Below are positions 33-64,000 of a DNA stretch of 64,000 nt, in pieces. The stretch is from positions 38,157,586 through 38,221,585 of the forward strand of contig CM074518.1 of the NCBI GenBank assembly GCA_037379345.1, read 5' to 3'. The notes under the pieces were generated by a model, which was not told where the DNA came from, did not search any database, and saw only the letters and a program-made list of their open reading frames with translations. The position numbers and the translations under genes were made by a program. The DNA is from Perna viridis. Taxonomy: Eukaryota. How positions within the stretch are numbered: position 1 is the first letter of the stretch; the number at the start of each line of letters is the position of its first letter.

Positions 33-649
33 TCAGGGGATATATCGATCAATGTCAGAAGTATCTAGAAAATTCCTGATGTATTTTCTAGCATACCATA
101 CAGCTTTGTGTAATGCATTTGTTACAACTCTCCATTCTTTCTCTCTTTCAGAAGGAGGAGCTGGAAAATATGAAAAACATACTTTCTCAAGTGCATCAAG
201 CTTTATAGGACATGCAGTTACATTCTTAGGAATAGCTTCTTTAATTGCACAAATATGTCTGAAAACAGTCGTAGCGAACCGATGTCTCTTTCCTAAGCAT
301 GAAGACATGGCATCATTTAAAATATCAACGGGAATACTGTAGGGTTTTACAGCTGGAGGGAGAGTATCAAAGTTATCCATGTTTTCAACTAATTCCAGAG
401 GTTGTTTCCCTATAAGCTTCATCAATGACAAATTCCAGAATTTGGGATCACACATTTTCACTTTAATCCCTTTCTTTGGTTTTGGTTTGCAAATAGGTAT
501 GACTAAGCCAGGATCATAAGATGGAAAGCCAGATGAACCAGTCTGATCCAGATAAAACTGGCATGAGTCGGTTTGATCTGGTATAAACTGGGTTCTGTCT
601 CCCATACCATGAGCTGTCTGTCTGGAAGAGCTTTCATACTGTGCATAAT
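33..649 (-). CDS. Gene A alternative terminal exon A6, BEN-like domain
   Basis: Acceptor ttgttttcag|AT, phase 1, open to the stop at 33. The C-terminus (FATTVFRHICAIKE...KLDALEKVCFSYFP...EWRVVTNALHKAV) follows the BEN pattern, though diverged. Confidence 0.72.
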
Positions 650-1029
650 CTGAAAACAAAATGCCTCAGTCTTAATCTGGGTAGGTTTTAGTGTTCTTTC
701 AAAATTACATTACAGAGGAAGAATCGAAACTTCATAGTAAATACTAGATTCAATTTAATTTGCATTTCAACCGGAATGTCAGACATATATTATGCAAGTT
801 ATATGCATACCCTTTCAAATGAATGGTAGAAAAAGTCTAAGAAAAACAAGAACTTCTATCTATGGATTAACCTTTTAAAACTTTCAAGGATAACAGTCTT
901 CACAACTAACTTTCCAGATCACAGGCCATAAATATATTTTTTAATCATTTTTATATAGTGTTTGTTGGCCTGTAGTAGTTAATTTTACGGGCCCACCTTC
1001 GTTTTGACTAGCCTTGGGCCTCGGATTAC

Positions 1030-2020
1030 TGTAAAGGAGATTGGCTTATACATGTAGTTTGTAGAGCAAAACTTATTTGTGAAGGATATTGGCTTTACAT
1101 GTAGTTTGTAGAGCACAACTTATCTGTACAGGAGATTGGCTTATACATGTAGTTTGTAGAGCACAACCTATCTGTAAAGGAGATTGGCTTATGCGTGAAG
1201 TTTGTAGAGCACAACCTATCTGTACAGGAGATTGGCTTATACATATAGTTTGTAGAGCACAACTTATCTGTACAGGAGGTTGGCTTATCTCTGCATGTAG
1301 TTTGTAGAGCACAACCTATCTGTACAGGAGATTGGCTTATGCATGTAGTTTGTAGAGCACAACCTATCTGTACAGGAGATTGGCTTATACATGTAGTTTG
1401 TAGAGCAAAATTTATCTGTACAGGAGGTTGGCTTATCTCTGTAGTGTAGCTTGTACAGCAAAACTTACCTGTGAGCCATTGGTTTAAATATGAAGTTTGT
1501 TAAACAAAACTGGTATGTGCAGGAGACTGAACAGTATATGTAGTGTAGTTTGCTCCAGAAAACTTATCTGTGAAGGAGAATGGCTTATGCATGTAGTGTA
1601 GTGGGTAAAACAAAACTTATCTGTGGAGGGATTGGCTTATATATGTATTCTGTAGAACCAAACTTGTCCATGGAGGTGAAACACTAAAACATGCAGTCTG
1701 CTCAACAAAACTTATCTGTGAATGAGAATGGCTTATGCATGTAGTGTAGTGGGTAAAACAAAACTTATCTGTGGAGGGATTGGCTTATATATGTATTATG
1801 TAGAACCAAACTTGTCCATGGAGGTGAAACACTAAAACATGCAGTCTGCTCAACAAAACTTATCTGTGAATGAGAATGGCTTATGCATGTAGTGTAGTGG
1901 GTAAAACATAAATTATCTGTGGAGGGATTGGCTTATTTATGTATTCTGTAGAACCAAAGTTGTCCATGGAGGTGATACACTAACATATGTAGTCTGCTCA
2001 ACAAAATTTATCAGTGTGGA
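1030..2020. repeat. ~48-bp minisatellite grading into a ~148-bp higher-order (trimer) repeat
   Basis: Unit ggagattggcttatacatgtagtttgtagagcacaacttatctgtaca recurs (attggc at 1088, 1135, 1183...); the longer unit starts at 1561, 1709 and 1857. Confidence 0.9.
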
Positions 2021-2649
2021 ATATATATACATGAAGTTAGTAGGACCATAACTTACTAAATCTCAGTCATAACAGCATACATTTTTCTTGAATGATCACT
2101 GGTAATTAAATTTGTTGAATTTTGGAATATGACAACAAATTTTCAATATTTTTCAATTTATCAACTAAAGGAAAAAGTACAATCTGATAATATCATCCAA
2201 ATTAATTTATCACAATAGCTTATTCATACAAGGTTCATTTTAAAAAGACTCACAAAATTTAATGATAAAATGTACTAGAACACATGATCAACCAGTTACC
2301 TAGTAGCTACCTGTAATACAGTGGTCTCTATCAAAACTTAATCTTAGAGGAAGTTTCCCAAAATCATGTTCGCAAGTCTTTCAACTCAAATATTAGTAAT
2401 GACATTTAATTTTTTCATGAGGTAAAAGTGTTCACCATTCCAAATTTCAGAAAGAATTGCATGCCATTTTTACTTCTGACAGTTGACATAAATAACAATT
2501 ATCTGAAGTAGAATAAAAATTCCATTTTCCTACATTAGTGAATTTTTTTTGTTTGAGTTTCCATACACTACATAATCTCCACTTTCACTGGACTCTTCTT
2601 GCCTAAAGCCCTTGTTTTAAGGACCAATCCTTGGTTTATTTGTACAGAA

Positions 2650-3790
2650 GTTTGGATTAATTGCTATCCATCACACTGAGAGTTATTCCTCTTGCTATAC
2701 AAAATGGTGTCCAGGAAACAGTCTTTGATATATTTGTACAAAAATTTGGACATGCAGCTGTCCATCTCATTGAGAGTATAAATTCCCCTTGTCTAAAACT
2801 TCTGTTTTCAGGAAACAATCTTAGATATTTGTACATGTTTGCACTGATGTCCAACATACTGAGATTTATTCCCCTTGACTAATACCTTTGTGTCCAGAAA
2901 ACAATTTTCGATATATTTTTACAAAAGTTTGAACATACAGCTGTTTATCTCAATGAGAGTACAAATTCCCCTTGTCTAAAACTTTTGTTTTCAGGAGACA
3001 ATCTCAGATATATGTGTACATGTTTGGACTGATGTCCATCATACTGAGAGTTATCCCCCTTGATTAAAACCTTTGTGTTCAGAAAACAAATTTTGATATA
3101 TTTGCACAAAAGTTTGAACATATAGCCGTCCATCTCACTAAGCGTTATCCCCTTGACTAAAAACTTTGTATTTAGAAGACAATTTTTTTTATGTATTTGC
3201 ACAAAAGTTTGAACATATGTCTGTCCATCTCACTGACAGTTAAGTGTCAGTCACTGTAAGAATCAGGCAGTACGTGAAACATGGTATAAAAAAACTATCA
3301 TTTTGAAAGTGTAATCTGACTACTTGCACCATCAGAATTGAGGAAAACAGACAAGATTTTCCATATCATGCTGCACAATTTAGTTACAATTTCACTGAAA
3401 TGCACTGAAAATGAACATTTCAAGGACAGATAACTCTTTCAAAAACCATATTTTTTTTTAGAACCTATTGAAAATTTTCTGACAAAGCCAGTGATGTAGA
3501 GGTCAAATAATGATCTTTTCAAATAGAGAAAGCAGATCAGTGGGTTTTTGACATGCATGTTTCTGATTTTTCCCATTTTGCCTGATTCTTACAAGTACTG
3601 ACACTTAATCAATTGCCACAATCCTTGGTGTTCAGAAAACAATTATTGATGTGTTTGATGTATTTATACAAAAGTTTGAACTGTGGTCCATCTCACTGAA
3701 GAGTTATTCCCCTTGCCTAAAGTTTTTGTTTTCTGCAAACAATCCTGGGTTTGTAAATGTTTGGACTAACTGCTGTCCATCTCCTTGAGT
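2650..3790. repeat. Degenerate ~92-bp tandem repeat, interrupted by a MITE and overlapping the end of exon A5
   Basis: ccatc(t/a)cactgagagttattcccctt-like core at ~2668, 2762, 2851, 2947, 3036, 3130, 3224 and ~3688. Confidence 0.8.
3240..3608 (+). mobile_element. TTAA-flanked non-autonomous DNA transposon (Kolobok-like MITE), copy 1
   Basis: TTAA-gtgtcagtcactgtaagaatcaggca ... tgcctgattcttacaagtactgacac-TTAA terminal inverted repeats; related copies at 8944 and 58755. Confidence 0.75.
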
Positions 3791-4428
3791 AGAAGCAGAA
3801 ACTGCATATTGAACATTTCTCTGTGTTGTATTAGGTACTACATGTAAGCCATGAGGAACATGCTGTAATGAAGGATCTCGCAAAGAGTTACACTGGATTT
3901 TTTGTTTGTCATAAGCAGTTCTAGTTGATTTGTCATAAAGGTTTCCTTGTTGTCCCTCATAATCAGGCTGTGTATTTTGTAACAGATTTACTCGAGGGGA
4001 GCTAAACTGGCCATGTTGGTGATGTCTATCAGTATGGCCACTCTGTTGTCTTATCTCAGTCACCTGAGCTTGAGGGGCCATTCTAAGTGTTTGTTTACTC
4101 CCATCCTCTTTGTTTTCTGTGTTTTTGTCTGAAGGAAAGTGCCATGAATGGAAGTCTTCATAACAATTGTACAACATCCCAGGCTTACACAAAGCTACAT
4201 TACATTTGAAACACTTTGTGCGGGTGTAAACAAACCACCCTGCTCTCGTTTTTCGCTTCCCACTCTGGCACATGAAACATAATTTTTTGTCGCCTTTGAC
4301 TAAAGTGTGACCAAGATTAGCCCATGGATTGTCAGATGAATTAGTTTTTCCACCGATGAAAAGTTGTACGTTGCTCAATTGGTGGTGTTGCCTGAGTATG
4401 TCAGGAAGTAATGAGGAATCATGGGAGC
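3704..4428 (-). CDS. Gene A alternative terminal exon A5, piggyBac-type cysteine-rich domain (CRD)
   Basis: Acceptor ctctgttttcag|GC, phase 1, in frame with ORF 3704-4378; HTLVKGDKKLCFMC...TRAGWFVYTRTKCFKCNVALC...CYEDFH. Confidence 0.82.
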
Positions 4429-5169: not shown

Positions 5170-5562
5170 AAATTATTGAAGTCATCACTACAGAAGTTTT
5201 ATGGTCATCATTATGAACTTGTGGATCGTTATGGTGTATCCATCAGCACCATGAAAACTGATTTATTCAACGGGTCATAGTTTTTCTTTCCTCGTTTGTC
5301 TACCCCGGACTTGAATTTTTATGAGCAACTCGGCGGGTGTTTCTAGAAAAGCAGAGGACGCTTACCCTACCGGTGCACCTGGTCCATGCTCCCAGTTTTT
5401 AGTGGAGTCCGAGTTGCTCATTTACTTTTGTAACTTTGTATGTATGATTTTAGTTACTTTATGTTCTTTGTTGTGTATGTCTGTTTTCCATGTCTGGTCT
5501 TTGTCCCTGGATCACATTCTTTTGATTACCGCTAAAACCTTGGTTCCCTTGATTACTCTTTC
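5170..5562 (+). mobile_element. 3' fragment of a Penelope-like retroelement
   Basis: Encodes KSSLQKFYGHHYELVDRYGVSI followed by a shared 3' region; near-identical copies at ~27535, ~29170 and ~39025. Confidence 0.65.
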
Positions 5563-6308
5563 AATAAGGTTTGGAGAAAACCATAACAAAAGTGGCTTGC
5601 TTAATCATTTTTTTTTATTAAACACGCACATATTGTCAAAAAATACTTGGTGAACTAGAAAAGGCCCTTTAGTACGAAAGGGGTGTCATCCATACATTAA
5701 TACAGTAAAAACCCATACAGTTTGCAAAATATTTTTTTTAAGAAATTGTCCTTTCACATGCGGTCCGCCCTAAAAAAAACCAATGGTGATTTTCAAAAGT
5801 TGGCTGGTAATGCAAAGGTCAAATATAAAACATCTGATTCAGCAGTTTTGTAGATAAATTTCTTTAACTTACCAAACGCACTTTATTTCATTGTTACGTA
5901 CAAACGTTAGCTTTCTGCCTCAAAAATCGGTCATTTGCTTTAAATTTCATTTATAGATGCATTAATGGATACTTTACAAAATGTATGTTCAGTGCCCATA
6001 ATTATTAGTCATAAACTAACCCTCAATTTTTGGCCTTATCTTCATAATGTAGTGAGCCCATAAGAAATCATGATTTACATTTACATTCATCAAATACATA
6101 TACATGTTATTACTGTGTTATCACACCAAAACCAAGTGAATTTAAAACACAGCAATGCAAATAACATCCCCACACCATTTTGCATATTATTCCACATGTT
6201 TTTTAGTAGTAAACATAGAAAGGTAATTTATGCACTACATTTAATAACTATTGGAACATTTGTATGTCAGACTGATGCGATTGTCTAATCTAAGCAATAG
6301 TAACATCC

Positions 6309-6904
6309 TCACTTCTTGTTTGTATATGACCACACAATATCAGATTTGACAGAATCTTTTATCATTTGATGATACTTGTCAAAACAGCCCCTTAATCCAC
6401 TACACAAGGGCACATCACATACATCACAGTGATAATAGGACTTAATGTACCATCCACAACTGGTCTTATTTCCGTTGCTCCTACAGAATGCACAGGCCTT
6501 AGCTTTTGAGTCAGTGTTGCGTACTAAACAATGAACACTGGTAGGATTACAGGAACCATGAGCTTCAGTGTAAGGAGGGATAAAGCTAATAGAAGGTCCT
6601 GTTACGTTTTGGTCCCAACGAACTATGAGGGGACTTGCAGAGTTTACTATATCGGAAGTTTCACAAGTTTGCTGGATATGTAATTGATCCTGTGCTTTAA
6701 CAAATGGTGTTTTCTCATTTGGTTCATTTTTGTTCCCAGGTTGATATTGTATAACCTGATGATGTTCACAACTATTCCTTTGCATTACCATGGAAACCAA
6801 GTGATTAATTTCCTCTTTGAACTGTTTTCCTGTATTCTGAAGATCATATCCTGGAATATTTGGTTTTTCCAGGGAACCAGTAACTTCCTGTTTATTCTGT
6901 TTCC
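6309..6904 (-). CDS. Gene A alternative terminal exon A4, piggyBac-type CRD
   Basis: Acceptor ggtttattacag|GG, phase 1; HCLVRN...CAFC...KTSCGWYIKSYYHCDVCDVPLC...CFDKYH, then a stop. Confidence 0.83.
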
Positions 6905-8544
6905 CTGTAATAAACCAAAGGTAACCAGTGATCTTCATTTGATCATGATGATTAGACTAAAATTCAATAAACCTTCCGTCTTTTTAATTAACAGTATATA
7001 GCGTTTGTTAAAATGGACAATTTTTTCACCTCTGTCAACATTAGAACATGAATAAAGGACCCTGAGCACTTTCATTAATAGGCAGAAGCTAGCCATTCTA
7101 ATAATTCATTTCTAGTCCAGAGAAACACATCTATACAAAACCCTGAATAATCCAAAAACCTGTCTAAACAAGACATCTGAACATGTCTCAACCAAACCAA
7201 TTTCAAAACTTTTTTTATATTTCAGAATTATACACCAAGAAAAATAATGTGAAAGCCTCAAATATAGCCAACATTTTATTTCTAAAATACCAACACTAAA
7301 CAATACATAAATTAATAGCACACAGACAAAAACATGCAAATATAACGATACGGATTTCTATTCATTAATTGTTCCCTATTTCTCTGTAGTATGAAATGTC
7401 TAGGTCTCACACTTAAGGAGGCGCATGTAGACCTGGGGTAAGGGACATAACTCTTGAAATCAGTGACATGTTTGTATTATATTCAATTACACCAAAGCCT
7501 ATCAAGCTTTCATTTGAAATAGAATGAAATCAATCCAAGTTATTTTGATGCTTTGATTGATGTCAAATGCAGAATACAAATGTTCCAATGATTTGTAAGA
7601 GTTGTGTCCCTTAAGCTGCATCCTTGAACATTTTTTTTATAAATCATGACCAAAATATGTGACATTACCAACTTTGGTACAGCTTACACTTCATGAACTG
7701 CAAAGTGAGTTACAAACAAGTGCAAACTGTGCAGAAGTTGGTTATGCAAACATAACATAAAAAATTTCAAAAAATATAAAAACTATCCTGATCCTTTCAT
7801 TCCTAAATGATTACAGTCCAAATTAAGATTGAACTTTCATCAAAATATTGTTAGTTTGGGACTATTTGAATGATAAGTTGGGACCGATTGATCACAGTAC
7901 CATGTAAGTTTTAAACAAAATAACCTATGTCGTTCAACCAATAAGAAAGTTTGACACAAATCATTTTTATTTTTATTTTTATAGCAGTATAAATCTTAAC
8001 TTTCTCCACTTCTTAAGAAGAGCTTCTAAATCGTTGATCTTCAGGTAGCCAGTATTCATAATGGTATTAGGTAGTGCAGAAATAAATGGTGTTTACATAA
8101 ATCTATAGCATTTGTTAGGGGGAACAGGCCGTTTTGATAGTCAAATAACATTTTACCACAGATAACCAAATTTCCTAAGAGCCATACCACAAGTGGACAG
8201 ACAGATGGACAAAAAGGAAAAGATCAAAAGTTATGAGCATAAAAATCAGTTTTATAAAACATACTGCACATTCAACCATAAATGAGGCTTCATTTAAATA
8301 AAAAATTGCATGGAAGAAATAGAAGAAACACAAGTTTTATTAAAGAATATACATGTATATAATAACCCTCCAAGGTGGCAAGGGCAGGGGGCAAAAATAC
8401 ACTTAGTATTAGTTACTAGCTACCCAATTTTCAGAGATATATGTCAATCAAGGTCTTACTACAGAGAAATCAGGAACATAATCACACTGAAATGTCATGG
8501 ATTTATTATAAAAGCAATACCTTACTACCTTCTTCCACAACTTG

Positions 8545-12360: not shown

Positions 12361-13280
12361 TCATAGGAGATATTCTTGTTGATTTGGTGAGAAGGATGGG
12401 TCTGCTGTTTCATCCCCATTCGTTTTATCTTCTTTAATTGGCAAGGTTTCTTTATCTTGAGCTGAATCTGAGTTGGTCTCGTCAAAATTTGGCACATCTA
12501 TATTGGATTCAGCTGAATCCATTGGATCAGGACCATTTTCAGTAGTGTTGACATCCTTAGGATCAACAGTAATGAAGTGTTGTTTCTCAAAGTCTTTCTT
12601 TGCAACTAAAGGATTAGGGATTGTTATGTCCTCAGTTATTATGCTAGGGGGTGGTGATACTTTATGAGCTACAAGACTGTTGTGGGTTTCATTCGGAGTA
12701 ACCAGATTAGGCGGCATTACACTCGGAGCTACCAGGCTGGGAGGTGTTATATTTTGGTCAGGATCTAACATACCCCCGTAAGCCATAAGTTGATCCGAGA
12801 TTGACTGTGAAAGCATGCTGGTAAATTCTTCATATTTCGGAGTGTAACTTGTCAAGCTTTGCTTGGGGCTATAACCTTCCTCAGTTTTAACATTTTTCCT
12901 AGATTTCTTTGGGGCCTGTGAAGCTGTCGCTTCTTTCAGGGTTTTCAACAACATTTTAGGAGACAAATCAGGCTGTTCCATTCTCAACTCATGGTAGCGA
13001 AGAAAACAATCCTTCTTCCCTTTACACAAACAAACATCACAAGCCTCACACTTATAATATGACTTGATAGCCCACCCAGATTTTGTTTTAAGACGAAGTA
13101 TGTTACAATAAGCACAAGCCCTTTTATGGCCAGTAATATGGACCAGTTTGTGCCCAGGCATGAATGCTATTTCCTGATCATTAGGGTCTTCAGAGGACAC
13201 CTCTTCCTTCCACCCAGGGTATTTCTTAGCTTTAACACAGGCTGGCATGGGCTTAGTTTTAATCACTGGCTTGATAGGTG
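12361..13280 (-). CDS. Gene A alternative terminal exon A3, piggyBac-type CRD plus an acidic/Pro-rich tail
   Basis: Acceptor ctttatactttcag|CA, phase 1; HKLVHITGHKRACAYC...KTKSGWAIKSYYKCEACDVCLC...CFLRYH. Confidence 0.85.
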
Positions 13281-14943
13281 CTGAAAGTATAAAGAGAGGC
13301 TAGTGTTAGCTTGACGTAAATGAAAAATTTTGCGTGCAAGAAAAATTAACATACACCTCATGGGAATCACTAAAACATTTTAAAAGGGATCTTTTTTTAT
13401 TCAAGAAACACTGCCTCTCTTTTTTATACTTCATAAGCCCTACCCCCCTCCCTTTTTTCATTTATTCCACACCTTTCCTCCTGCTCGTGTTCCTAGTTTT
13501 AGTGAAACCCTGAGACCAATGAACACTGCAGTACTTAATGTTTATACAATCATGCCAGGGTTATTTCATGCATATCTGTATCCATCTAGTATTTTGTCAT
13601 GCTAAAAATTTCGTTTTTCCCAATAAATCAGATTGATTATAGAATACCTTCAGGCTAATGAAAATCGAAGTTTGCTATATCTCCATTAAACAAACTTCGA
13701 TTAGATGCTCCTTGCATAATACTACTGGTTTGCTTATGTCTCATATTTTGCAAATAAGAATCAACACTCAAATCAACTTTCGATCTCTTTTCACCTACAA
13801 TTTTTTTTTCTAATTGTTCTCTGAACAGCATTCCAACTCACTTCTATAAAACAGCATTGTACCAAATTATCTCCTTTTTAAACCAACCAGAATTACAAAA
13901 AATCAGTGACATTATTTAACATAATAACAAGATTTATTCAAGGACCTTTGTGAAGATATCTTAATTCAAAACGAATATCTAGGCCTATCTTTTCAGCTTT
14001 GTTCTATTCTGATGTTATCAACACAAATCTATTTTCAAAGAAGTTACAGATGTTTGAATATACTGTTTAATGAATTCTTCACTATCTAGTACATATTTAA
14101 TGATGATTTCCATATAATTTATTGATGACATGTCAGGCTTCAACTCTAACAGTCGTCTGGTAGTCCTGTGCCTACCTAATTTGTAAGAGGACTACCTTAA
14201 AATATCAACGGGCAGTCCTTTGGGCTAGCCCAATTAGTTCTTAAAATTTCATTAGTCCAAAGAACAGGACCACAAAATAATTTAGAGGACTCCCTAATTA
14301 TCTATCACATAGTCCTGTGGGCAATCTATCATGAAAAGTTAGTCTCAAAGCCTGCATATTATACCTACTGGAAGACTCGAAAGCTATGGTACCCTTCCAC
14401 CTGCTAAATAGTCCATGATATTCAAAGCAAACAAAGCCTACGTCCAGTGACCAGTCAAACGAATCGATCTACTTTGAAACCATTTGTATAAAAATTAAAT
14501 CTTTAAAAGCTAAATCAACAATTAACATGTCATAGATATTTATTCTGTTTCAAGTATTGCAACATATACATATGGAAAACAGTCAATAATAACTGATGCA
14601 TGTGACAAGGTGCTAACGGAACATGGCATTGATTCTGCTAGAGCTTTCAGGTATTTTACTTCCTAAAAAAACGTGCAAGTCGTGGACCAAGCAACAAAAT
14701 AAACATTGAAATTTTGAACACCAATAAAATAATTGAAAGACTTGATACAATACCTCCCCTCTACATGCACTTATTTTGTACATTTGTATATATATCAATC
14801 TGGAATGTAAACAATGTTCATAGTCAACCTATCCCATGTACAGGAAGTACCAGAATGTCAATTTTTGTGTTGCTTAAAGATATTGGTAGATTTGGAACAT
14901 TCAATGTAATAGCCTTTGGAGTGATGCTAACTGAAGTTATGCT

Positions 14944-15446
14944 TTAAAATGGAAATTTCCCAATTGATCTTCTATCGTCCATTTTCATGTACCCATAGTC
15001 CGAGAAAGAGTTTCTAATGCCTTTATCAATGGCAACAACACACTCCCTCCACATCTGAGGGTAAAGAGAATTATTCCCTACAGGATAATATGCAAACACT
15101 ATTTTTTCAATTTTATCTAGTTTGGCCCCATCTAAAGGTAGCTTGCCTCTGCGACCAAAACAGTTGTGATCCTTCAATTCTGAATCAGTAAAGAAATGCC
15201 TAACCAGTCTCCAAGCAAAGTTCTGTCGTGACACCGCAGAAGCCAAAATTTCTTCAATAGTCTCCTGCTCTTCCACAGGCACACATTCAGGCCTGTTTTC
15301 AAAGTTAATAACTTTGATAGGAATAGCATCTTCAATATAAGGAAAAGTCTCCATATTATCACCTCCCATGACAGTTTTTCCATCTTTAGCAGCCACAACC
15401 TTGAACTTGGGATGATCATGTTTGTTTTGCCTGTTACCATGGTAAC
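14944..15446 (-). CDS. Gene A alternative terminal exon A2, BEN domain
   Basis: Acceptor tgctgttgcag|GT, phase 1; SRQNFAWRLVRHFFTDSELKDHNCFGRRGKLPLDGAKLDKIEKIVFAYYP...WRECVVAIDKGIRN is a typical BEN domain. Confidence 0.87.
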
Positions 15447-16674
15447 CTGCAACAGCACACAACAAAATGATCATCCTTAGTTTACAAGCTGAGTTTGTTT
15501 CAGGTACAAATGTATTTCACAAAATCAATGTCTTTTTTTTTCAGTATTTTTTACAATTAAGAACATGGCTATTAAGGCATGTTATTTAAGATTTTTGGAT
15601 ATTTATGTAAATCTTGAGCAAGTATCAAATTTCCATGACATATGAACAGTAGCCAACACACTGAACCAGATTAGACACACCACCATGAACTATGACTAAA
15701 TAGAACAGACATTCTATGCCAGAAACCCAAACTCAACCTCAGCATTGATACTTTGCAACACCCTCCCCCTTTTATTTTTCTCTACAGAATTACCCAGTGT
15801 TTGGTACGTGTATAATTCTAAGTCAAAAATCTGTGCTAATCCATTTCCAACATGCAAATTTTCTTTATTTACTCAGAAGACATGACATCAAGAACTCTTT
15901 ATATATTACACCTACCTGCATGAATATTGCTAAATATACATGTGTGTCACATCAGCTAGCATCAAAGTCACATTTGTTAATTTGGATATTAATTACCAGT
16001 ATATTGAAGATTGAGAAAACAAATGCTTTTCATTAGGCTTAGAAAATACTTAAGGCTGTGGTAGTAAATCACACATCAAAATTAATTTGAAAGCTTTTTA
16101 TTGATTCGGTTGTAAGTTTAAAAATTAGTTATGAGGTATTTTTAGTTGTTACCATGGGAAAACAATGACCCACATACTTATTTATAGCAATATTCGTCTG
16201 TTCTTCAGCATACGTCTGCATTCAATGTTGATTCTTTTTTTTTTATTTTCAACAAACAGGAAGTTATCTACATATACCATGTACTTACACATCATCAAAG
16301 CATTCCTTTTTAAAAATAAGGACAGTTAGAATCTTTCTGTATTGATTCATTCATCTCCGCAAGGCACAAAATTTGAATCTTAAGTTACTCAAAAATCACC
16401 CACTTCATTTTTACGGCAAAACAATCTATACTTCTTTTTTCAAAGATGTTTAATAATAACAGAAATGTTTATACAAGAACATAGAAAGTAATTTGCATAA
16501 TTTTGAATATACATGTATATTACATACGGTTCAGCTTTTTTCTGTATGAACAAAATATACAAGTACAACATTACAACATGTATATGTTAATAATATAACA
16601 TCCACTACAGGCTCTTAGTGATAGATAAATGTACATGTACATGTATGTGTCTTTTCTGATTCCAAAAGTGTAGT

Positions 16675-17285
16675 TTAATTGGAATCTTCCTGAACTTTAG
16701 ACTTAGCCTTAACTACAGGTCTCCTGAGGCTTTCATTTATTTTTGTAATTGCATTTAATTTCCACAATTCTATATTTTTCAGTTCTGGATGGAAGTATGT
16801 GACATATCTCTTGATGTAACCTTTCCTAGCAGGATCAAGGGCATGTTTGTGCTTTGGACCCCCACCAAAATATGAATAATGAATTCTCTGCCCATCTGGA
16901 CCATATAACTCTGGAAATAACCTCTCAGTAATTTTTTTGGCAAAGTTACCCGAGCCTATGCTCTGTTTATGTATTTCAACTAGGTCAGGAAGAGATATGT
17001 AAGATTCTTGAGGAATGTCTTTGAAAGGATCCCCCTTAGTTTCACTTAGCAACTTGTGATAGTCGACAACATTCCATCTTGTCCTCTCGCTAGTATTGCG
17101 TGTTTGCTGATCATGAAATCTCTCTATATTTTTCACACGTAAATAATTTATTCCAACATTTTCAGAGCTCTCCATATCATTATCATAGGGAACTTGTTCC
17201 ACATGATCATTTTCAGTATTTTGTACAACAACATAATCAGCTCTTTTTTCTATTATTCCAGTGCTTTGCAAGTCACCAATGTCAT
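16675..17285 (-). CDS. Gene A alternative terminal exon A1, BEN domain
   Basis: Acceptor atgtcatttcag|AT, phase 1; GNFAKKITERLFPELYG...ALDPARKGYIKRYVTYFHP...WKLNAITKINESLRR. Confidence 0.82.
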
Positions 17286-19942
17286 CTGAAATGACATAAA
17301 AAGCTGCTTTCAGAGAATTTTCATGAGGCCATTTGTAAACAAAATAAAATGTTTGACAGATTATGTGTCAGTGCTTTGGAATTTCAGTTTTCTTCTATAG
17401 ATTTCATTTTTTTTATTTACGGGAAAATTCATAATCGCTGATTTCTGTTTTCAAGCTAAACTGTCATGTGACCTGTCAAAAATTTCACAAGTCTTGGGCA
17501 CTTAGTTTAAATGATTTCCTCCGGGAATTACAATTCTGCACTTGCAGATGAACACAATTTTTCTGCAAACGAAAGTCTAATAAATGACAGTGATTAGGAT
17601 TAGAATTCAGAAAATGGGCCATTTTAATGATCTTCAGAATTCCAATGGGCCAATCTTTGAAAAAGCATTTCATTTCAGTGGGACATTTTCAGATGGAATG
17701 TGATCAATGATGCATGGACACCTCTAATCCCAATCACTGCAAGTGACAAAAAAATAGACGAAAAGAAAAGCACTGCATCTTCTTATTTGTCACTAAACAA
17801 TGACAGCAACTTGCAAAGCACTGTACTTCATGGTGTTTTGGTAGATAACTTCCTGTAGTTAAAATTGGCAAAAAAATGTTAATATCCTGAGCGTTTATCT
17901 TCCAACAAACCAATCTATGATTTGATCTTTACCAGACTGTTGAGAGTTAGAAGACAGAGCTTATTCCATCAACATTTTAGCTAAGTGTGGTTCATATAAT
18001 ATACATGTATATAGCAAAACTGTTTCATTAAAAAAAAGAACTTTTTCACTCCTATTGTCAAATGAAATAAGATATAAAATATATACAGATTTTTTTACAT
18101 ATCTTTCAGTGAAAATTTCAATAGTAAGTTGAATTTAATGAAACAGCCTTTCTTAAAATGACACTAATGTGATATACATTGCTATGACATGGTACAATGT
18201 TTATTTCTATTCTGCTCTTTGACTTTATCTTAAAATAAAATTTTCTACTTAAAATTTATTTCTCATTATAACATACCACAAACTATTTTTTGAGGTTTTT
18301 TTTTTCACTTTCAATCACCTGCCACAATTCACTGAATATAATGGCCTCAGCAAACGAGACCATTGGGTTTCAAAACATGGTACAAGATTTCAAATATCAA
18401 AATTACATCAATAAAGATAAGGGGAGACAAACTGGTCTCTACTAGAGGTGAACCTTATTTTGCATTATTTTTTGGGAAGGTAGTTTCATATTTTTCAAAT
18501 TTGAGCTGAATAGAATAAGTAACATATTATACTAAGTTTATGATCTATAGCAAATCTTGGACATCACTGCCTTTGACCAAGCTTGTAATCAAGGTAAACA
18601 AATACATGAATGTCATAGCAATGTGGAAAATTTCCCTTTCCACTTCCAAAGTGCTCAAAGCAAAAAAAGTTCTGAATTTAAAATTAATTTTAACTTTATT
18701 GGACAACAATTCAAATATATACAATTTTCTACTTAAACAAGTTAAGTTCAAATGTGACATTTACCTTCAGTTCTGAAAAGGGAAATTTATTCTTACACAT
18801 ATTTCAATACAAAGTTCAATTTGCAAGAAAGTATGCATGGACTTTTCAAAATAAAAATCTGCTCAAAAACTTTCTAACAAGATTTGTTCCCCTTATCACA
18901 TTAATCTTGAATTTTACTAAAATTATTATAAAGAAAAAAGTAAATTTTGTTTTTGCATTCAAAAAATGAAAGTCACCCCATGTTCCAAAGTTCAAAGGGG
19001 TGTAACTCACATAAATTCAGTGGACCATAAATTACTGGTAATGTGCACAAAGACTTAGACATGTACCTACAGTTTCATTTGTCAAAATTTAGTCCAGTAG
19101 TTTCTGAGAACCAAACTGGGGAGCAACATAATTCATTTCTAGTGTTTTTTGACAATGCTCTGAACTGAACTTTTTTTAAGTAAAACAAATTCTGACACCA
19201 GTGATATTGTTGGCTTTTCCCCACATCCTTTTTCATTATGAAAATATGCCTCATTCAAGACATTTTTTTAAATCAGAAATTTGGAATAACTGTTCAAAAC
19301 CTTGAGTTTGTAGTTAAAATGATTATCTTCATATAGTATGTCAAGAAAAAGATGTCATAAACATTAAATAAATGTAATTTTGAACAGAAACATCATACAA
19401 GTATCAAACCCTTTGACTACCATTGGGAAATAGTTTATCTTATACGTAGACTATTGGGATAATTTTTTAGCCATTTTTGGACAAATGGTGAAACTTTCAT
19501 CAGGGGCAACATACCTATTTCAGAGCTAATTTAAGGCAACCAATATCACTTGGTATACATGTAGTTGGAAAAAAGCTTTTCAACATAATTTAACAAGATT
19601 TAAAAAAGTAATGCACATAGCAATTTACAGCCCCCAGCAGGTGTAAAAAGAAAATGACAATGGACTAAAACTGTAACCAACAATGACTTATTCAACAATT
19701 TACATGAAGTAAAAAGTGGATCACATAATTTTCCCCCCTAATTGTTCCCTCCCTAAATTTTGAAAAATCCATTTTTCTTCTGTCAGGTTTATTTTATACT
19801 GGAAGTATACACAATCACAGTCACCTTTTCTCTTATGATAAATATCATGAAAGGAAAAAAATAGATAGTGTCACACCCCATATAAAAATAAACTGACATG
19901 TGTAGCGAGGGTAATCAAGGGTAGATAACCATGATAACCTAC

Positions 19943-20223
19943 CTTTGAACTGTCCAATGTACCAGGAATTATTTTGATCATTTCCAGTGGCTTCATTTGA
20001 CATTTCATCCCTTGACCAATCACCAGAGGCCTCTTCCAGCTCTAAATCACTCTCTTCCTCTTGATCCCGCTCTCTTTGATGATCTCCCATTGCCCCCTCA
20101 ACTGGGACATCAACATACATGTCTAACCCAGGATCGGAGGCAGGTTCAATTTTGACCAGACTTAAGTCTGGTGCCATGTCAGTACTGTTAGTTGCTAAGC
20201 CATCATCTAGTTTACTTTTACCC
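19943..20223 (-). CDS. Gene A last constant exon (acidic linker); ends at the shared phase-1 donor
   Basis: Acceptor ttctgtttcag|G (phase 2), donor AAA G|GTAGGT (phase 1); homologous to 49391-49740 (VKIE/VKVE, GLDMxVDxP, GDW). Confidence 0.85.
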
Positions 20224-21599: not shown

Positions 21600-22765
21600 C
21601 CAGTATCTTTGCCTGAATCTGTGGAAGGTGGTCTATCAATTTCACTTCCTGTAGAGGATGATGGTCTATTGGCTGATGCATCCTGGGACATATTGGCAAC
21701 TTGGGATGCACTTCCTGCTGCAAAAGACTTTTTGTTCTGATTTTGCTGATTGATAGGAGACAAATTGGCTGTTGACATACTAACAGGGAACAAGCCTCTT
21801 TGATCAGGGGGAAGTGGTGACTTTTTGGCAGATTTTTCAACAGAATCTCTATGACCTTCAAACATTGGTTTGTGGTTTGAAGGAGTTGAAGTAGACCCTG
21901 GTAGTACTGAAAGTGGACTGACTGTAATGGATGTGTCTCGTCCTGTGATTGGGACATCATTAGCTATGGTTGGATGAGATGATGAATCGGTGACATTGAC
22001 TACATGTACATCGGTGGATGGGTTGACTTGACTAGATACCGATATGGCTAAACTTTTCTGTACAATGGGCTGTGCCGACTTGTTATTGTCCTTGTCTGAT
22101 GGTTGTGTTTGTAGGATTTCTAATCCATCCTCCACAATTTCTATGACCCCTGATCTCGGTGGAGGACGATGACCTGCTCCCATTCTTGGCACCCTTTCCC
22201 AAGGATCACTTGCTGCTTGATGACCCATATAGCTGTGAGCCATACTTAGAGTGTCGTCTGCTTTCTGACCAAACATAGCAAGGTCAATATTCGGACTAAG
22301 AGGTCTTTGTTGTTGTTGCTGTTGTTGTTGTTGCATTCGTTGACGTTTTCCACCAGGACTGACTGGTCTCATTGAATCAGCTGCTGCACGCTTCATCATT
22401 CTCTCTTGAACAGTTTTTTGAAGGTCTGTTGTTCTTACATGACGGAATTCTAATAGATCAGCTGATGAATACTTATACTGTGTGTTTACATATGCATGTA
22501 CACCTGTTTTTTTCTGTAAACAATTGTAGAAGTCTATACAACACTTTGTAACATTATCAACTTGTAAAAGCCTTGCAACTTTCTCAATGTCCTTTACATT
22601 TTCTTCTGTTAACATCATAAAGCCTTCGTACAAGTACTGTAAGAATGAATTGACTGCTTCCTGCTTTATGTCAGCTGCCAACCTGACTTCCAGATGTGAT
22701 CCTACAGCAGCATTATCCATAGACTGTAGCATGGGACAAGCTGCAACCAACACCACTCTATGGGC
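21600..22765 (-). CDS. Gene A constant exon: BTB/POZ C-terminal part and a long low-complexity linker with polyQ
   Basis: Acceptor ttttcag|GCC CAT (AHRVVLVAAC...FLQYLYEG...VARLLQVDNVTKCC); donor GG|GTTTGT, phase 2, matches the next exon. Confidence 0.92.
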
Positions 22766-23160: not shown

Positions 23161-23289
23161 CTTAGTAGTTACATTTCCAGTCTTAATTAAGGCATCACAT
23201 AACATCTGAGATCTCCACATCTGAGCTAACTGTCCAAGTAAGGAACTCGAGTGGATCTGGTTCATATAAACTTTTTGATACTGATTCAT
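23161..23289 (-). CDS. Gene A first coding exon, BTB/POZ N-terminus
   Basis: MNQYQKVYMNQIHSSSLLGQLAQMWRSQMLCDALIKTGNVTTK; acceptor 7 nt before the ATG (exon starts at 23296); donor AAG|GTAAAA, phase 0. Confidence 0.92.
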
Positions 23290-46529: not shown

Positions 46530-46655
46530 ATGAATTATCAGAAAGTTTATATGAACCAGATTCACTCGAGTTCGTTACTATGTCAGCTAGCTCAGATGTG
46601 GAGAAGTCAATTAGTATGTGATGCTTACATCAGGACTGGAAATGTTACTACAAAG
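46530..46655 (+). CDS. Gene B first coding exon, BTB/POZ N-terminus
   Basis: MNYQKVYMNQIHSSSLLCQLAQMWRSQLVCDAYIRTGNVTTK; acceptor ttctttcag| at 46504; donor AAG|GTAAAA, phase 0. Confidence 0.92.
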
Positions 46656-47662: not shown

Positions 47663-48879
47663 GCCCATAGAGTTGTATTACTGGCAGCATGTCCTATGTT
47701 ACAGTCCATGGAGAAGGCATCAACTGGTTCCCATCTTGAAGTCCGACTGACAGCTGACATTAAACAAGAATCAGTCAATATGTTCTTACAGTATTTATAT
47801 GAGGGCTTTATGTTATTGACAGAAGACAATTGTAAAGAAGTGGAAAAGGTGGCAAGATTATTACAAGTAGACAGTGTTATCAAATGTTGTGCAGACTTTT
47901 ACAAATGCTTAGAAGCCAAAACAGGAAATAATGCATATTCTGCATCTAAATACAAATACACATCATATGATCATTTAGAATTCCGTCATGTAAGAGCAAC
48001 AGACCTACAAAAAACTGTGCAAGACCGTTTAATGAAAAGAGCCTCAGAGATGGGCAGACCATCAAGTCCCACAAGTAAAAAACAGAGGTTATACAGATCA
48101 TCTTCACCACCAACAGAGTTGTCACAAAGCACATTGAGTCAGCGAGCTGATGACACATTTTCTATGTCACATAGTTATGGATCTGGGTCACAGGAACAGT
48201 GGGAACGAGTACCTAGACCAGGAAATCGTGCTCAGAAATTCCAACAACCAGCTGTCATAGATATTGTTGAGGATAGCATTGAATTAGTTCATGTAGATCC
48301 AGGTGATGGCCAACAGCCCCCTTCACAAAGGGGTGTATCTGTTTCTGTGGCCAGCCAGTTAGACACTGGTCCTCCGAATATTAGTGTTGTGAATGTTACA
48401 GCTGGTCCCCAGAAAACAAGTGCTCCATCATATTCATTGCCGTCATCACGCCAGTCATCAGTTAGTTCATCTCCATCAAAACCATCAGATCGATCAGTCA
48501 TTTCATTAACAGACCAACATGACCACAGTGCCTCAACAAGTAGACCACCACAATTAATATTAGCCCCAGGATTAACACCTCCACAGGAGACATCACAACA
48601 GAGGACCCCACAGCTACAGTTAGCTCCAGGCCATACATCACCACATGAGTCATTACAGCAGCGACCTTCACAATTCCCATTCTCAGATCGATTAGGTTCA
48701 ATAAAACCGTTTGCAGCTGGAAGTGCACGACAAGTCGGTCCTCCATCAATGTCTAGTCTTCATAGTGGTCCTCCGTCATCAGGTTCCCCTTCAACAGTCA
48801 GACCAGATAGATCTCCCTCATTGAGTGGGAGGAGTGATAGTTTGGACAGACCTCCTAGTGTGGAGGCTAATAAAGATAG
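47663..48879 (+). CDS. Gene B constant exon: BTB/POZ C-terminal part and Ser/Pro-rich linker
   Basis: Acceptor ctttacag|GCC CAT (AHRVVLLAAC...FLQYLYEG...VARLLQVDSVIKCC); donor AG|GTAAGT, phase 2. Confidence 0.92.
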
Positions 48880-55952: not shown

Positions 55953-56251
55953 ACTTTCAGAGTTACGTGGAATGGGCCAAACGTACTTCAGCCAAAAAGC
56001 GTCGCCGTACCAGCCGAAAACCAGCACCTACCAAGGATACTGCTGTTTCTTACATTCTTGACAATAAGGACAGCCTAAATCCACAGTGTAGAATATGCAA
56101 TGTTTTTCTGACATCTATTGAGGATTTGAAAGCTCATCAACGGGATCAGCACCAGGAATATACATTTTTCTGCAAGTTATGTGGAAAAGGATTTAAAACT
56201 TGGAATGGGCATGCCGGTCATATGGAAAGACACAAGAGAGGGGAGATGTAA
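55953..56251 (+). CDS. Gene B alternative terminal exon B1: basic NLS-like stretch and two C2H2 zinc fingers
   Basis: Acceptor tctgctttcag|AC, phase 1; CRICNVFLTSIEDLKAHQRDQH and CKLCGKGFKTWNGHAGHMERH, then a stop. Confidence 0.85.
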
Positions 56252-59108: not shown

Positions 59109-59400
59109 TGGTCAATTAGTATAATATTGTCATTACTTACTCTGAAGAAGCGTCTCGCGTTACAGGGGCTGATACTTCATTGGTCTGTTAGTATAATATT
59201 GTCATTGCTTACTCCTAAGGAGCGTCTCGCGTTACAGGGGCTGATATTTTATTGGTCTGTTATTATAATATTGTCATTGCTTACTCCCAAGGAGCGTCTC
59301 GCGTTTCTGGGGCTGATACTTCATAGGGCTGTTAGTATAATATTGTTATTGCTTACTCCTAAGGAGCGTCTCGCGGACGACAGTTTTTGTTGGTCTGTAA
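59093..59400. repeat. 72-bp tandem repeat (~4 copies) that includes the MITE terminus
   Basis: gcgtctcgcg at 59150, 59222, 59294 and 59366; the unit includes ggggctgatactt from the MITE end. Confidence 0.85.
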
Positions 59401-59893
59401 AATATTTCGATGTAGTTGCGTTATTGTTTCATAGTTACCTATTATTACTTTTATATAAACGGAAAGTATTTTTGAAAGAGGAATTGGTCGAAGCAGAGCA
59501 TGTTGAACGAATGACTGATAGTTGACTGCTGATACTGTACGTATTGAATATATTTCCTCCCCAGAAGATTGTTTGAGTACTATATGGTTGTAAATTACTG
59601 CTGAGTTGACGTGTAGCATTATATAGCTGACAAAGGTTTGGTACATCGGAAGCCTCCAATCAAGTCTTGTAATACATGATGAGTTTGTTTTCACCACCGC
59701 AGATCGATATACATGTCCACTTTAAGTACCAGTCCACGTAAAATTCAGACACTGCCAATGGCAAAGTGATTCATGATGTGGAAAAACCCACCAAACAAAT
59801 AATGTTTTTTCAGTCAACATATGCTATAATTTCACCTAACGATAAACATTTCTGTAGTTAAGTCTGCACTTTTTAGAGAATCATACATTTTTT

Positions 59894-60089: not shown

Positions 60090-60394
60090 GGTGGGGTCCC
60101 GTTGCTGTGTGGCATAGTTCTGATGGTGTACATTGGAATAGCAACAGTTCTGGATATCAAGTTCAATATATGTCGAAAGCCCAACCAGGATCGCATAATT
60201 TGATTCCTCTAACCTCATCTAGTAACAAACCGTGTGCTTTGTGTAAAAAGAATAACATTCGAACTGCTACTGGGCTACCAACAAAAACTTATTACAAATG
60301 TGACACGTGCGATGTGTGCCTCTGTAGACCACAAGTTCGTGATTGTTTCGTACAATATCACGACGAAATGTTCAAACACGGCAAAATGATTTGA
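60090..60394 (+). CDS. Gene B alternative terminal exon B3, piggyBac-type CRD
   Basis: Acceptor gtccttttcag|GG, phase 1; HNLIP...CALC...RTATGLPTKTYYKCDTCDVCLC...CFVQYH; AATAAA at 60430. Confidence 0.85.
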
Positions 60395-61290: not shown

Positions 61291-61607
61291 AGGCCTCCGA
61301 CACGAGTCTATGTTTTACAAACCAACACGTGTTTGTCCGTGATGACACTGGTAGCAACAAGGCCTGTCTGATGTGTTCAGTTTTTGGCAACAAAACTAAA
61401 TGTGGAGAAGCTAGGAAGACGTATTATAAATGTACAGCTTGTAACGTTTTCTTGTGTAAAGGTGATTCGAACTGCTTCAGAAATTTCCATCTTCTGATGG
61501 GAGAAACCGCCGTTACGTTGCATGGAAGTCGTAGAGAATTGCGGCAAACATTAGCTTCAAAATATGATGAATGGTGCAGTAAAACTTATAAAAACCCCAC
61601 CGAATGA
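61291..61607 (+). CDS. Gene B alternative terminal exon B5, piggyBac-type CRD
   Basis: Acceptor ttatcctttcag|AG, phase 1; HVFVR...CLMC...KTKCGEARKTYYKCTACNVFLC...CFRNFH; AATAAA at 61742. Confidence 0.83.
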
Positions 61608-62416: not shown

Positions 62417-62814
62417 ATCACTTAAATTGTACCATAAGTGCTATACTCCCAAAGTAAATTTAGATTGAATTTTTTGGGGGTTTAACTTGAATCAGTTAAG
62501 AATAAGGAGACAAAAAAATACCACTTTGATTCTGGTCAAATGCTTATCCTGTGTCAAATATCTATTAGAGATCTAACTTCAAAGCTGTATTAAGTTAGTA
62601 TAGTGTCCATACTTGCACTAACTGTTCAGCGTTCAACATGTGCGGTCGTATCAAAGTGCGCCCCGCAAAGCATTTAATAGTTTAAGTAGATTTGAGTCTT
62701 TGAAGTTGTTTCGAGTTCGTAGTATCGATTCATTTTGAAAGCGATAGAATATTGTATGGTTTGGGCTTAAAATGTGTGAAATTCCAAGTTTATTTCTATC
62801 GTTTATCCTTTCAG

Positions 62815-63137
62815 AGGTCTCCGACAATAGAGGTAGTCTATTTTTTACAAACCAACACGTGTTTGTCCGTGACGACACTGGTAGCAACAAGGCCTGTCTG
62901 ATGTGTTCAGTTTTTGGCAATAAAACTAAATGTGGAGATGCTAGGAAGACGTATTATAAATGTACAGCTTGTAACGTTTTCTTGTGTAAAGGTGATTCGA
63001 ACTGCTTCAGAAATTTCCATCTTCTGATGGGAGAAACCGCTGTTACGATGCATGGAAGTCGTAGAGAGTTGCGGCAAACATTAGCATCAAAATACAATGA
63101 ATGGTGCAGTAAAACTACTAAAAATCCCACCGAATGA
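62815..63137 (+). CDS. Gene B alternative terminal exon B6, near-identical duplicate of B5
   Basis: Same acceptor ttatcctttcag|AG, phase 1; the peptide differs from B5 at only a few residues; AATAAA at 63276. Confidence 0.83.
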
Positions 63138-63972
63138 CAATATAATATCTTTGATGCCTGTCATTGTATTCTCCGTAATTATAAACATAGTAACAGTATG
63201 ATAGATAAGACCTGTACATTCTGATTTACTTTCTCATTGGACGCGTATTGAACGCATATTTAAAGTATATAGTTGAATAAAATTACTATAACTACTAGCA
63301 CTTTGAACATTTGATGCCTTGGTATAAACACTTAAATTTTGTTGTCGTTGGAATCTTCGTGTGATCAGATCTTCTCCAGTACACTTAGTCCAAAATTTAA
63401 TGAGAACATTGTCAGTGTAGATCTAAATGATACTCCTGCATTCGAAATTTAGGATAAATCGCTCTCTGGACTCGATGCATAGAGTTTGATGTTTTAAAAC
63501 AAATATTGTCGCTGTGTTACTTCGTCAATCTGATTTATATATTCCCACTCGACTATCAGATAGTAGATTGGAATCACCCCGTCAACCTGTTCGAATTCCA
63601 TCTTCATTATCATTGCTTGAGTTTCATCTCAATTATCTTTGCTTCCACTGATTGATCCACTTCAAATTTGTTTTGTGGCTTTATTTAGGTGGAACTGAGT
63701 TTGCTTGTTGTTCGATATCGACAGCCTGTTTTGTGGTACTTTCCTATTTTACTGTATGGAACGAGATTGGGGTATATATTAGAAACATCATGGTCATGTT
63801 GAATTTGCCCCTTTAGATACGTATGTTTGTTGTGCTTCTTTCTGGTATCGGTATATCATGGTGCTAGCATTGTATCAACTAAATACTTGCATTATTTTTT
63901 TTTCTGGAATCGATGGAGTATTTCGTTGTTATTCAGGAATAATTTGTTTACCGAATTCGTTTTTACTTTCAG

Positions 63973-64000
63973 TTGACCCAACCAACCTGTCGGTTTCAAT
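63973..64000 (+). CDS. Start of a probable further terminal exon (paralog of 62205), cut by the window end
   Basis: Acceptor ttttactttcag|TTGACCCA, same context as 62205; the phase-1 frame VDPTNLSVS is open to the window edge. Confidence 0.4.

Follow-up and report, generated by a model that had tools for sequence, protein, structure and literature searches.

A probable lola/mod(mdg4)-like pair of BTB genes with arrays of terminal exons in the mussel Perna viridis

Described systems and the Perna viridis locus

Drosophila provides the textbook examples of BTB factors whose DNA-binding domain is exchanged through arrays of alternative terminal exons. A locus pair of the same kind very probably exists in the mytilid mussel Perna viridis, within a 64-kb, N-free stretch (30–39% G+C) of contig CM074518.1 (C8; positions 38157586–38221585), hereafter the window. 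The locus is composed of two paralogous, divergently oriented BTB transcription-factor genes, gene A on the minus strand and gene B on the plus strand. In each gene, a constant BTB part is followed by an array of terminal exons with putative DNA-binding modules, and these mutually exclusive exons would be selected alternatively from one donor. The analysis covered the window together with 60 kb of flanking genome on each side (184 kb in total; coordinates are relative to the window and negative to its left), and the 723-Mb genome (46 contigs) was searched. Protein and domain searches were run exon by exon, and the constant exons were joined by script only for length and stop-codon counts.

In lola, the donor that follows the constant 5' BTB exons is spliced to any of about 20 same-strand 3' exons, each of which supplies a DNA-binding module and a stop codon, and numerous transcription-factor isoforms that differ in specificity result. 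The Perna viridis locus resembles lola in this arrangement of exons. However, lola combines a Tramtrack-type BTB domain (FxLRWN motif, hexamer-forming, arthropod-only; PMC11426971) with C2H2 fingers, whereas the locus described here, from the phylum Mollusca, combines a ZBTB-like BTB domain mostly with piggyBac-type fingers, probably of the cross-brace fold, and BEN domains. The same structural study found the Tramtrack type to be specific to arthropods, with no Tramtrack motif in Mollusca, and the multi-isoform BTB factors of Drosophila to be of the Tramtrack type, with one isoform for each non-Tramtrack BTB-C2H2 factor (PMC11426971). In mod(mdg4), the BTB part is combined with about 30 terminal exons, each encoding one transposon-related zinc module (FLYWCH), and the size of this array matches that of gene B. 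Its exons lie on both strands and are joined by trans-splicing (PMC13490949), whereas every exon of the Perna viridis locus lies on the strand of its gene. The BTB class and the module family differ as well.

Two further comparisons concern the modules. The BEN isoforms of gene A share with NACC1 and NACC2 the order of an N-terminal ZBTB-like BTB and a C-terminal BEN domain, and the predicted model of one gene A module (the exon starting at 649) superposes on the NACC1 BEN-DNA structure (Z 9.1). However, NACC1 has one fixed C-terminus and the BEN exons of Perna viridis are closest to BEND3 by sequence, such that the likeness is one of domain order and not of orthology. The zinc-finger modules correspond to the C-terminal cysteine-rich domain of piggyBac transposases (solved with DNA in 5lme and 9c0f), which places the locus beside PGBD1-5 and CSB-PGBD3 as host genes that keep piggyBac-derived parts. 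It differs from these genes in that only the finger of about 55 residues is kept, without the core, and in having a multiplied exon array rather than a single fusion. In comparison with piggyBat, the finger of the locus has an insertion between the first two cysteine pairs.

Anatomy of the constant exons and the terminal exon arrays

The constant coding exons of the two genes are as follows.

23161..23289, minus strand: gene A exon 1, with the ATG at 23289, the BTB N-terminal extension and donor GTAAAA; 81% nucleotide identity to Mytilus edulis contig L013
21600..22765, minus strand: gene A exon 2, the rest of the BTB domain and a long low-complexity linker; Pfam BTB E 1.5e-10
19943..20223, minus strand: gene A exon 3, ending with base 19943 at the shared phase-1 donor (GTAGGT follows); depth peak and both borders in four runs
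46530..46655, plus strand: gene B exon 1, with the ATG at 46530
47663..48879, plus strand: gene B exon 2, BTB domain and linker; Pfam BTB E 1.8e-10; 68% identity to Mytilus californianus LOC127705185
49391..49740, plus strand: gene B exon 3, ending with base 49740 at the phase-1 donor (GTAGGC follows), which is the exact point of divergence among the gene B isoforms of Mytilus

An earlier account made from the letters of the window (the sequence-only reading) had proposed three constant coding exons per gene, encoding about 525 and 564 residues and ending at a phase-1 G|GTAGG donor, and the lengths, frames, donors and Pfam BTB matches all agree with it. The constant frame of gene A comprises 1576 nt (525 codons plus one base) and is stop-free; that of gene B comprises 1693 nt (564 codons plus one base), is open throughout and ends in …GGCTTTAGAG. 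The exon-2 products of the two genes are 55% identical, and the constant-exon proteins share 70–73% identity with those of Mytilus species and about 50% with those of oysters and scallops. Pfam searches with exons 1–3 of genes A and B found no domain besides BTB, hence no DNA-binding domain. The label "head-to-head" given to the two genes is correct for their opposite orientation; their first coding exons are 23 kb apart, so the term describes orientation only.

The BTB domain had been judged ZBTB-like rather than Tramtrack-like, and this assignment is borne out. The FxLRWN motif is absent from the N-termini of genes A and B, and the nearest solved relatives are ZBTB17, BACH1, BCL6, NAC1 and ZBTB7A, with KLHL3 and KEAP1 scoring about equally (E 1e-7 to 1e-3). 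Such a domain would fit an origin independent of the arthropod Tramtrack group. The hallmark of ZBTB proteins, several C2H2 fingers in one fixed C-terminus, is not found here; instead, a single exon carries two C2H2 fingers.

Downstream of the constant exons, the following terminal exons and candidates are located in gene A (from proximal to distal) and gene B.

16675..17285, minus strand: gene A terminal exon 1, BEN domain with its own stop (Pfam BEN 27.5 bits; BEND3 BEN E 4.4e-15); RNA joint
14944..15446, minus strand: gene A terminal exon 2, BEN domain with its own stop (BEND3 E 4.5e-5); 65% identity to the C-terminus of Mytilus galloprovincialis isoform P0013; RNA joint
12361..13280, minus strand: gene A terminal exon 3, piggyBac-type zinc finger with a long acidic tail (hidden Markov model (HMM) of the locus, E 6e-22) and a phase-1 acceptor; 82% identity to a Mytilus edulis exon
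6309..6904, minus strand: gene A terminal exon 4, piggyBac-type zinc finger (Pfam zf-Tnp_2 E 5e-6), with AATAAA 63 nt past the stop
3704..4428, minus strand: gene A terminal exon 5, piggyBac-type zinc finger (locus HMM E 1.8e-14; Pfam zf-Tnp_2); loose contig end in run X11
33..649, minus strand: gene A terminal exon 6, putative divergent BEN-fold module judged from a model; 34% identity to the C-terminus of isoform P0016
-2761..-1472, minus strand: gene A candidate BEN-like open reading frame (ORF), with an ATG and a candidate phase-1 acceptor at -1542
55953..56251, plus strand: gene B terminal exon, two C2H2 fingers (Pfam zf-C2H2 family and regular expression); 38% identity to C2H2 isoform P0068
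57971..58119, plus strand: gene B candidate terminal exon, doubtful; 48 basic residues, with a phase-1 acceptor and AATAAA only
60090..60394, plus strand: gene B terminal exon, piggyBac-type zinc finger (Pfam zf-Tnp_2 E 1e-6); 65% identity to the C-terminus of Mytilus trossulus isoform P0064
60650..61005, plus strand: gene B terminal exon, piggyBac-type zinc finger (Pfam zf-Tnp_2, locus HMM) with a phase-1 acceptor
61291..61607, plus strand: gene B terminal exon with a piggyBac-type zinc finger (Pfam zf-Tnp_2, locus HMM); forms a recent tandem pair with the 62815 exon, the two modules being 97% identical
62815..63137, plus strand: gene B terminal exon, piggyBac-type zinc finger (Pfam zf-Tnp_2, locus HMM); twin of the 61291 exon
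63973..64000, plus strand: start of the next gene B terminal exon, in an ORF (63783-64265) that crosses the window edge and is followed by 24 more up to about 100180

All 12 acceptors named earlier have an AG with a pyrimidine tract and open a phase-1 frame. The accompanying claim of six terminal-exon ORFs in gene A and at least six in gene B, each with a phase-1 acceptor, one module and a stop, stands with respect to modules for 11 of the 12. It is doubtful for the exon at 57971, for which domain and homologue searches returned no match. Poly(A) signals are located 35–140 nt past several of the terminal-exon stops, in agreement with the AATAAA motifs noted earlier.

Array ORFs were collected across the 184 kb by tblastn with bivalve isoforms and by an HMM built from the locus itself. 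In total, 37 ORFs encode zinc-finger modules, eight on the minus strand (-17843 to 13299, gene A) and 29 on the plus strand (60044 to 100180, gene B). All 37 lie on the strand of their own BTB gene and none on the opposite strand (0.5^37, about 7e-12). When the best acceptor of each ORF was picked by a simple score that is blind to frame, it was in phase 1 for 33 of the 37 exons (binomial p 2.5e-12). Such agreement in strand and acceptor phase indicates that the arrangement is not due to chance. As had been suspected from arrays that run to both window edges, the flanks enlarge the repertoire, bringing it to about 12 terminal exons over 37 kb in gene A (eight fingers and four of BEN type) and about 30 over 45 kb in gene B (29 fingers, one C2H2 exon and one doubtful exon). 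Among the approximately 42 exons of both arrays, 37 encode an intact piggyBac-type zinc finger, four a BEN module and one a pair of C2H2 fingers.

Of the domains expected from the letters, BTB, BEN, zf-Tnp_2 and zf-C2H2 were all found by Pfam, which missed the modules of the 13280 exon (a long ORF) and the 649 exon; Pfam likewise left the -2761 module unrecognised. The zf-Tnp_2 family (PF13842) is matched by 33 of the 37 finger modules at E 0.01 or better (best E 5.4e-10), and the module profile matches residues 534-574 of the 578-residue piggyBat transposase (E 1.6e-3). The AlphaFold model of the finger (pLDDT, a model confidence score, 82.5) has the piggyBat-DNA complex as its top Foldseek match (root-mean-square deviation 1.5 A over 46 columns, prob 0.97), with an E value of 0.2 that is weak, the domain being small. 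The piggyBac cross-brace finger 5lme is also among the structural matches. For the 649 module, the confident part of the AlphaFold model is the C-terminal 100 residues, and its top five structural matches are all BEN (Z 8.3–10.1; next 6.2). Together with a weak BLASTP match, this predicted fold suggests that the module is a divergent BEN domain. Judging by the solved DNA complexes of relatives, the modules of the locus may bind DNA.

The fingers are old in appearance as well as numerous. Eight Cys/His zinc-ligand columns are invariant in all 37 modules, with a mean column identity of only 43%. Overall, the modules share 25–60% identity, and nearest relatives, many of which are neighbors in the array, are 40–67% identical except for the one 97% twin pair. 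This sequence pattern points to a finger array that is old, has grown by tandem duplication and has been maintained. In the entire genome, 120 matches to the transposase core (PF13843) were found, none of them in C8:38.10-38.28 Mb or within 220 kb of the locus. In comparison, 24 of the 28 genome-wide PF13842 matches are in the locus and one more is 3 kb downstream of another BTB paralogue. The lack of a nearby core and the clustering of PF13842 matches indicate that the fingers are domesticated, core-less and concentrated here.

These observations bear on whether the downstream ORFs might be independent small genes, or relics of piggyBac-type transposons, beside two ordinary BTB genes. The transposase type of the finger, the stand-alone proteins of 73–280 residues that many gene callers report and the ATG of the ORF at -2761..-1472, which could stand alone, would be in line with this possibility. 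However, no transposase core is found in the locus compared with 120 elsewhere, the zinc ligands are all intact despite 25–60% module identity, and 37 of 37 ORFs share the strand and 33 of 37 the phase of the donor. Moreover, three ORFs are joined to BTB exons in RNA, and orthologous modules form the C-termini of BTB isoforms in other bivalves (see below). Independent genes or relics are thus a very improbable explanation, and terminal exons of the two BTB genes are by far the better description of these ORFs.

Other copies of the constant part were observed in the genome. The gene A exon-2 protein has 11 matches in the genome, all of them on the same chromosome-scale contig as the locus (C8, at 2.99, 3.03, 9.30, 24.45, 24.89, 38.12, 38.18, 38.21, 42.89, 43.26 and 48.43 Mb). 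The paralogue at 43.26 Mb is followed, after 3 kb, by a same-strand ORF that encodes a piggyBac-type finger. In the left flank, a third BTB copy on the minus strand (-39104..-36906) consists of exon 1 and an exon-2 homologue, with a 247-residue open frame followed by TAG. The 21 kb downstream of it yielded neither an exon 3 nor terminal exons, and the copy may be a truncated duplicate.

RNA joints and the choice of terminal exon

Direct evidence for the use of several terminal exons from one donor comes from gene A. Contigs of four runs from four studies were aligned to 14300-20260, a 6-kb stretch that contains donor 19943 and two acceptors, and they cover the exons and skip the introns. The joint from 19943 to 17285 is present in all four runs and the joint from 19943 to 15446 in three of them. 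The skipped segments have CT..AC ends on the plus strand, which correspond to canonical GT..AG on the strand of gene A. Intron-less joints with canonical ends in four studies indicate spliced RNA, the runs being presumed to be of RNA. Upstream, the contig continuation at 20224 is the end of exon 2, which confirms both the exon 2 donor and the exon 3 acceptor. Furthermore, a loose contig end at donor 19943 in run X11 equals the start of the 4428 exon in 30 of 30 letters, and a mixed consensus at the same donor in run X6 fits the 4428 exon plus, tentatively, the 6904 exon. In both of these runs, at least four long contigs open with the last 30 bases of gene A exon 3, a pattern that k-mer assembly gives at a branch point. 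The proposal that several terminal exons are used from the single gene A donor is therefore upheld by contig joints to 17285, 15446 and 4428.

Several other features of the same contigs were recorded. An odd joint from 19943 to 15025, inside the BEN exon, occurs in three runs with 21 letters on one side and non-canonical ends; it may be an artefact of the contig graph or a cryptic event. Paired loose ends at 16252/16632 and 17679/17739, where contigs leave the reference, recur in runs X1, X6 and X11, and suggest an indel polymorphism or a repeat in the 3' untranslated region of the 17285 exon and in the intron that precedes this exon. Between genes A and B, an inverted repeat at 24259-24900 has 141-nt arms that are 91% complementary and 360 nt apart. 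Each arm has an outward-facing GGTAGGT donor-like site, with CCGCCATGTT between the arms, and the repeat could act as a bidirectional promoter for both genes, with a pair of non-coding first exons. The gene A contigs are 75–127 nt longer than the three coding exons need, which would fit a non-coding first exon at this place.

The mechanism that is considered most probable starts from the three constant coding exons, which would supply a dimerising BTB domain of the ZBTB type, followed by a long, disordered linker, and end at one phase-1 donor. Each terminal exon would then contribute one DNA-binding module, bounded by a separate phase-1 acceptor and stop codon and in most cases followed by a separate poly(A) signal. 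The donor would be joined to one acceptor, most simply by cis-splicing coupled to the choice of poly(A) site, with splicing to an acceptor competing with cleavage at the poly(A) site of the same exon. About 40 proteins would result, with a common dimerisation interface and differing DNA specificity. Because isoforms of one gene carry the same BTB domain, mixed dimers could pair two different DNA-binding modules. The exon anatomy, the three gene A joints, the domain identities and the conservation of junction and exon order in bivalves are observations; what we infer from them is that all exons are used, that splicing takes place in cis, that each module binds DNA and that the proteins dimerise.

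The same isoform system could instead be assembled by trans-splicing, at least for the distal exons, with separate promoters for each exon or block of exons. There is precedent in mod(mdg4), for which all mRNAs are reported to arise in this way (PMC13490949), and a cis transcript of gene B would need to run past as many as about 30 poly(A) signals in 45 kb. The intron stretches just upstream of acceptors 13280 and 6904, which are conserved with Mytilus, might also be taken in its favor. However, the terminal exons are all on the strand of their own gene, and opposite-strand exons of the sort that make trans-splicing obligatory in mod(mdg4) are absent, so trans-splicing is not required here. 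Furthermore, the exon order is collinear, introns of 2.6–4.5 kb are spliced normally, and the region upstream of the acceptors has no common motif beyond the acceptor consensus (only CCTTTCAG was enriched in the motif search). Trans-splicing is therefore regarded as unlikely, though it is the most credible of the three alternatives considered in this work, and alternative choice among same-strand exons in cis is preferred. Docking/selector RNA pairing was considered as a further candidate and rejected. When 40-nt windows from the first 1.5 kb of intron past each donor were paired with the 300 nt that precede every acceptor, the computed duplex energies were no better than those of shuffled targets.

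A number of points weigh against the proposed scheme of alternative terminal exons. A joint is proven for three of the approximately 42 exons, perhaps four, and the direct RNA joints are from gene A only, with gene B having indirect support from the isoforms of orthologous RefSeq genes. Protein searches with gene B exons 3 and 2 found no spliced Perna viridis fragments; in this gene, the first acceptor is 6.2 kb from donor 49740. The contigs fit cis-splicing and trans-splicing alike, and cis-splicing to distal exons means read-through of up to about 30 poly(A) signals. In four of the 37 zinc-finger exons an acceptor in another phase scores best, with the phase-1 site tied or second. The 57971 exon and the acceptor at -1542 were identified from sequence pattern. 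Finally, DNA binding and BTB dimerisation are attributed to these proteins from knowledge of their families and should be read as probable properties.

Several additional ORFs of the window may be noted. On the minus strand between genes A and B, a 90-residue ORF at 34208-34477 looks by eye like a reverse-transcriptase fragment. The ORFs at 5315-5650 (plus strand, in array A) and 27623-27961 (plus strand, between the genes) encode nearly the same peptide and look like copies of a dispersed repeat. Those at 1076-1499 (minus strand) and 59109-59522 (plus strand) encode tandem peptide repeats and point to tandem DNA repeats between terminal exons; Pfam returned no match for the latter ORF.

Conservation among bivalves and meaning of the locus

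Isoforms were compared in the RefSeq sets of six Mytilus gene models, two scallops and one oyster (Crassostrea virginica). In these sets, the isoforms of one locus share a prefix that ends in the exon-3 residues found in the window, after which the variable part opens with G, D, E or A in every case. This restriction is explained by the split codon, which takes its first base G from the donor. That mussels, scallops and oysters have all kept the position, the phase and the flanking residues of the junction indicates that the system is old. Precomputed Pfam annotations of the orthologous isoforms combine BTB with PF13842, C2H2, BEN or HTH_psq, and each gene A terminal exon in the window has the C-terminus of a bivalve BTB isoform as its best match. 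All named matches, in all searches, are from pteriomorph bivalves. The Atlas contains a mollusc cluster with BTB and zf-Tnp_2, which is taken as a lead only.

Exon order is also conserved. In the Mytilus edulis contig (L013), the order is exon 2, exon 3, a BEN exon of the 17285 type, an extra BEN exon, a BEN exon of the 15446 type, a finger of the 13280 type and a finger of the 6904 type, which is collinear with Perna viridis and answers the earlier call for synteny in a related genome. The extra BEN-type exon (21586-21891 of this contig), right after the 17285-type exon, is missing in Perna viridis, indicating exon gain or loss within the array. At the DNA level, the alignment is limited to the exons and two short intron pieces, 13281-13425 (73%) and 7269-7345 (77% to Mytilus edulis), just upstream of acceptors 13280 and 6904. 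These intron pieces may be splicing control elements.

This conservation has to be set against the possibility that a few proximal exons are in real use and that the rest are tandem copies, rarely or never spliced and without separate function. The RNA proof is indeed for proximal exons only, and the many nearest relatives that adjoin in the array, including one pair that is 97% identical, are as expected from tandem duplication. However, frame and zinc ligands have been retained throughout, and the modules are old and divergent rather than recent copies. In addition, orthologous exons and their order persist between genera even though the introns no longer align, and RefSeq models 13–27 isoforms for the Mytilus orthologues. 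An array of mostly idle copies therefore seems quite improbable, and more so than trans-splicing. Broad use of the arrays, as in the lola/mod(mdg4)-like reading, is in better agreement with these patterns.

The treatment of these loci by automated annotation is uneven. The sequence-only reading had anticipated that such annotation would split the locus into many small genes, which applies to some gene sets and not to others. In RefSeq, the orthologues are single genes with isoform numbers up to X24-X27 (gene A, Mytilus), X18 (gene B orthologue) and X37 (scallops), such that up to 37 isoforms are assigned to one gene. In contrast, the annotations of Tegillarca, Pinctada and the Mytilus edulis GCA assembly split or merge the terminal exons. 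The Mytilus edulis annotation has a separate 394-residue "gene" that spans two terminal exons, Tegillarca has a finger-only protein two locus tags from the BTB protein, and in Pinctada one 1047-residue model strings together BTB and three fingers. Similarly, among the best 150 of 976 library matches to the module, most are stand-alone ORF calls of 73–280 residues, twelve of them from the Perna viridis locus.

A full-text literature search found no description of such loci outside arthropods. A 2025 study of oysters states that nothing had been published before on oyster BTB genes (PMC12111275), and another paper lists BTB among the domains that co-occur with transposon domains, with no BTB loci with alternative exons in its main text (PMC12062965). 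As far as found, the system is visible in RefSeq isoform lists, under the name "uncharacterized protein", and is apparently undescribed in the literature. A wider hypothesis is that pteriomorph bivalves independently evolved "one BTB, many DNA readers" loci, with piggyBac finger arrays of at least 30 exons that yield combinatorial homo- or heterodimeric factors of a chromatin or insulator type, possibly by trans-splicing. This hypothesis is tentative, and we consider it possible but rather doubtful in its full form.

The locus may nevertheless be informative in several respects. For annotation, it is a warning that several public bivalve gene sets split or merge the terminal exons of orthologous loci. 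The module is unusual, being the DNA-binding finger of a piggyBac transposase without the transposase, multiplied about 37-fold, and this locus holds almost all detectable copies of the PF13842 finger in the 723-Mb genome. With about 40 related DNA-binding modules, it would serve as a natural library for studies of specificity. It would also be a second, independent system in which to study the selection of a single acceptor and poly(A) site, out of tens, for one donor. The mollusc locus appears to follow the same genomic logic as the Drosophila arrays, but on a ZBTB-like BTB domain. If such loci did evolve independently in bivalves, arrays of alternative DNA-binding exons would be a repeatedly evolved solution and not a peculiarity of Tramtrack-type BTB factors.

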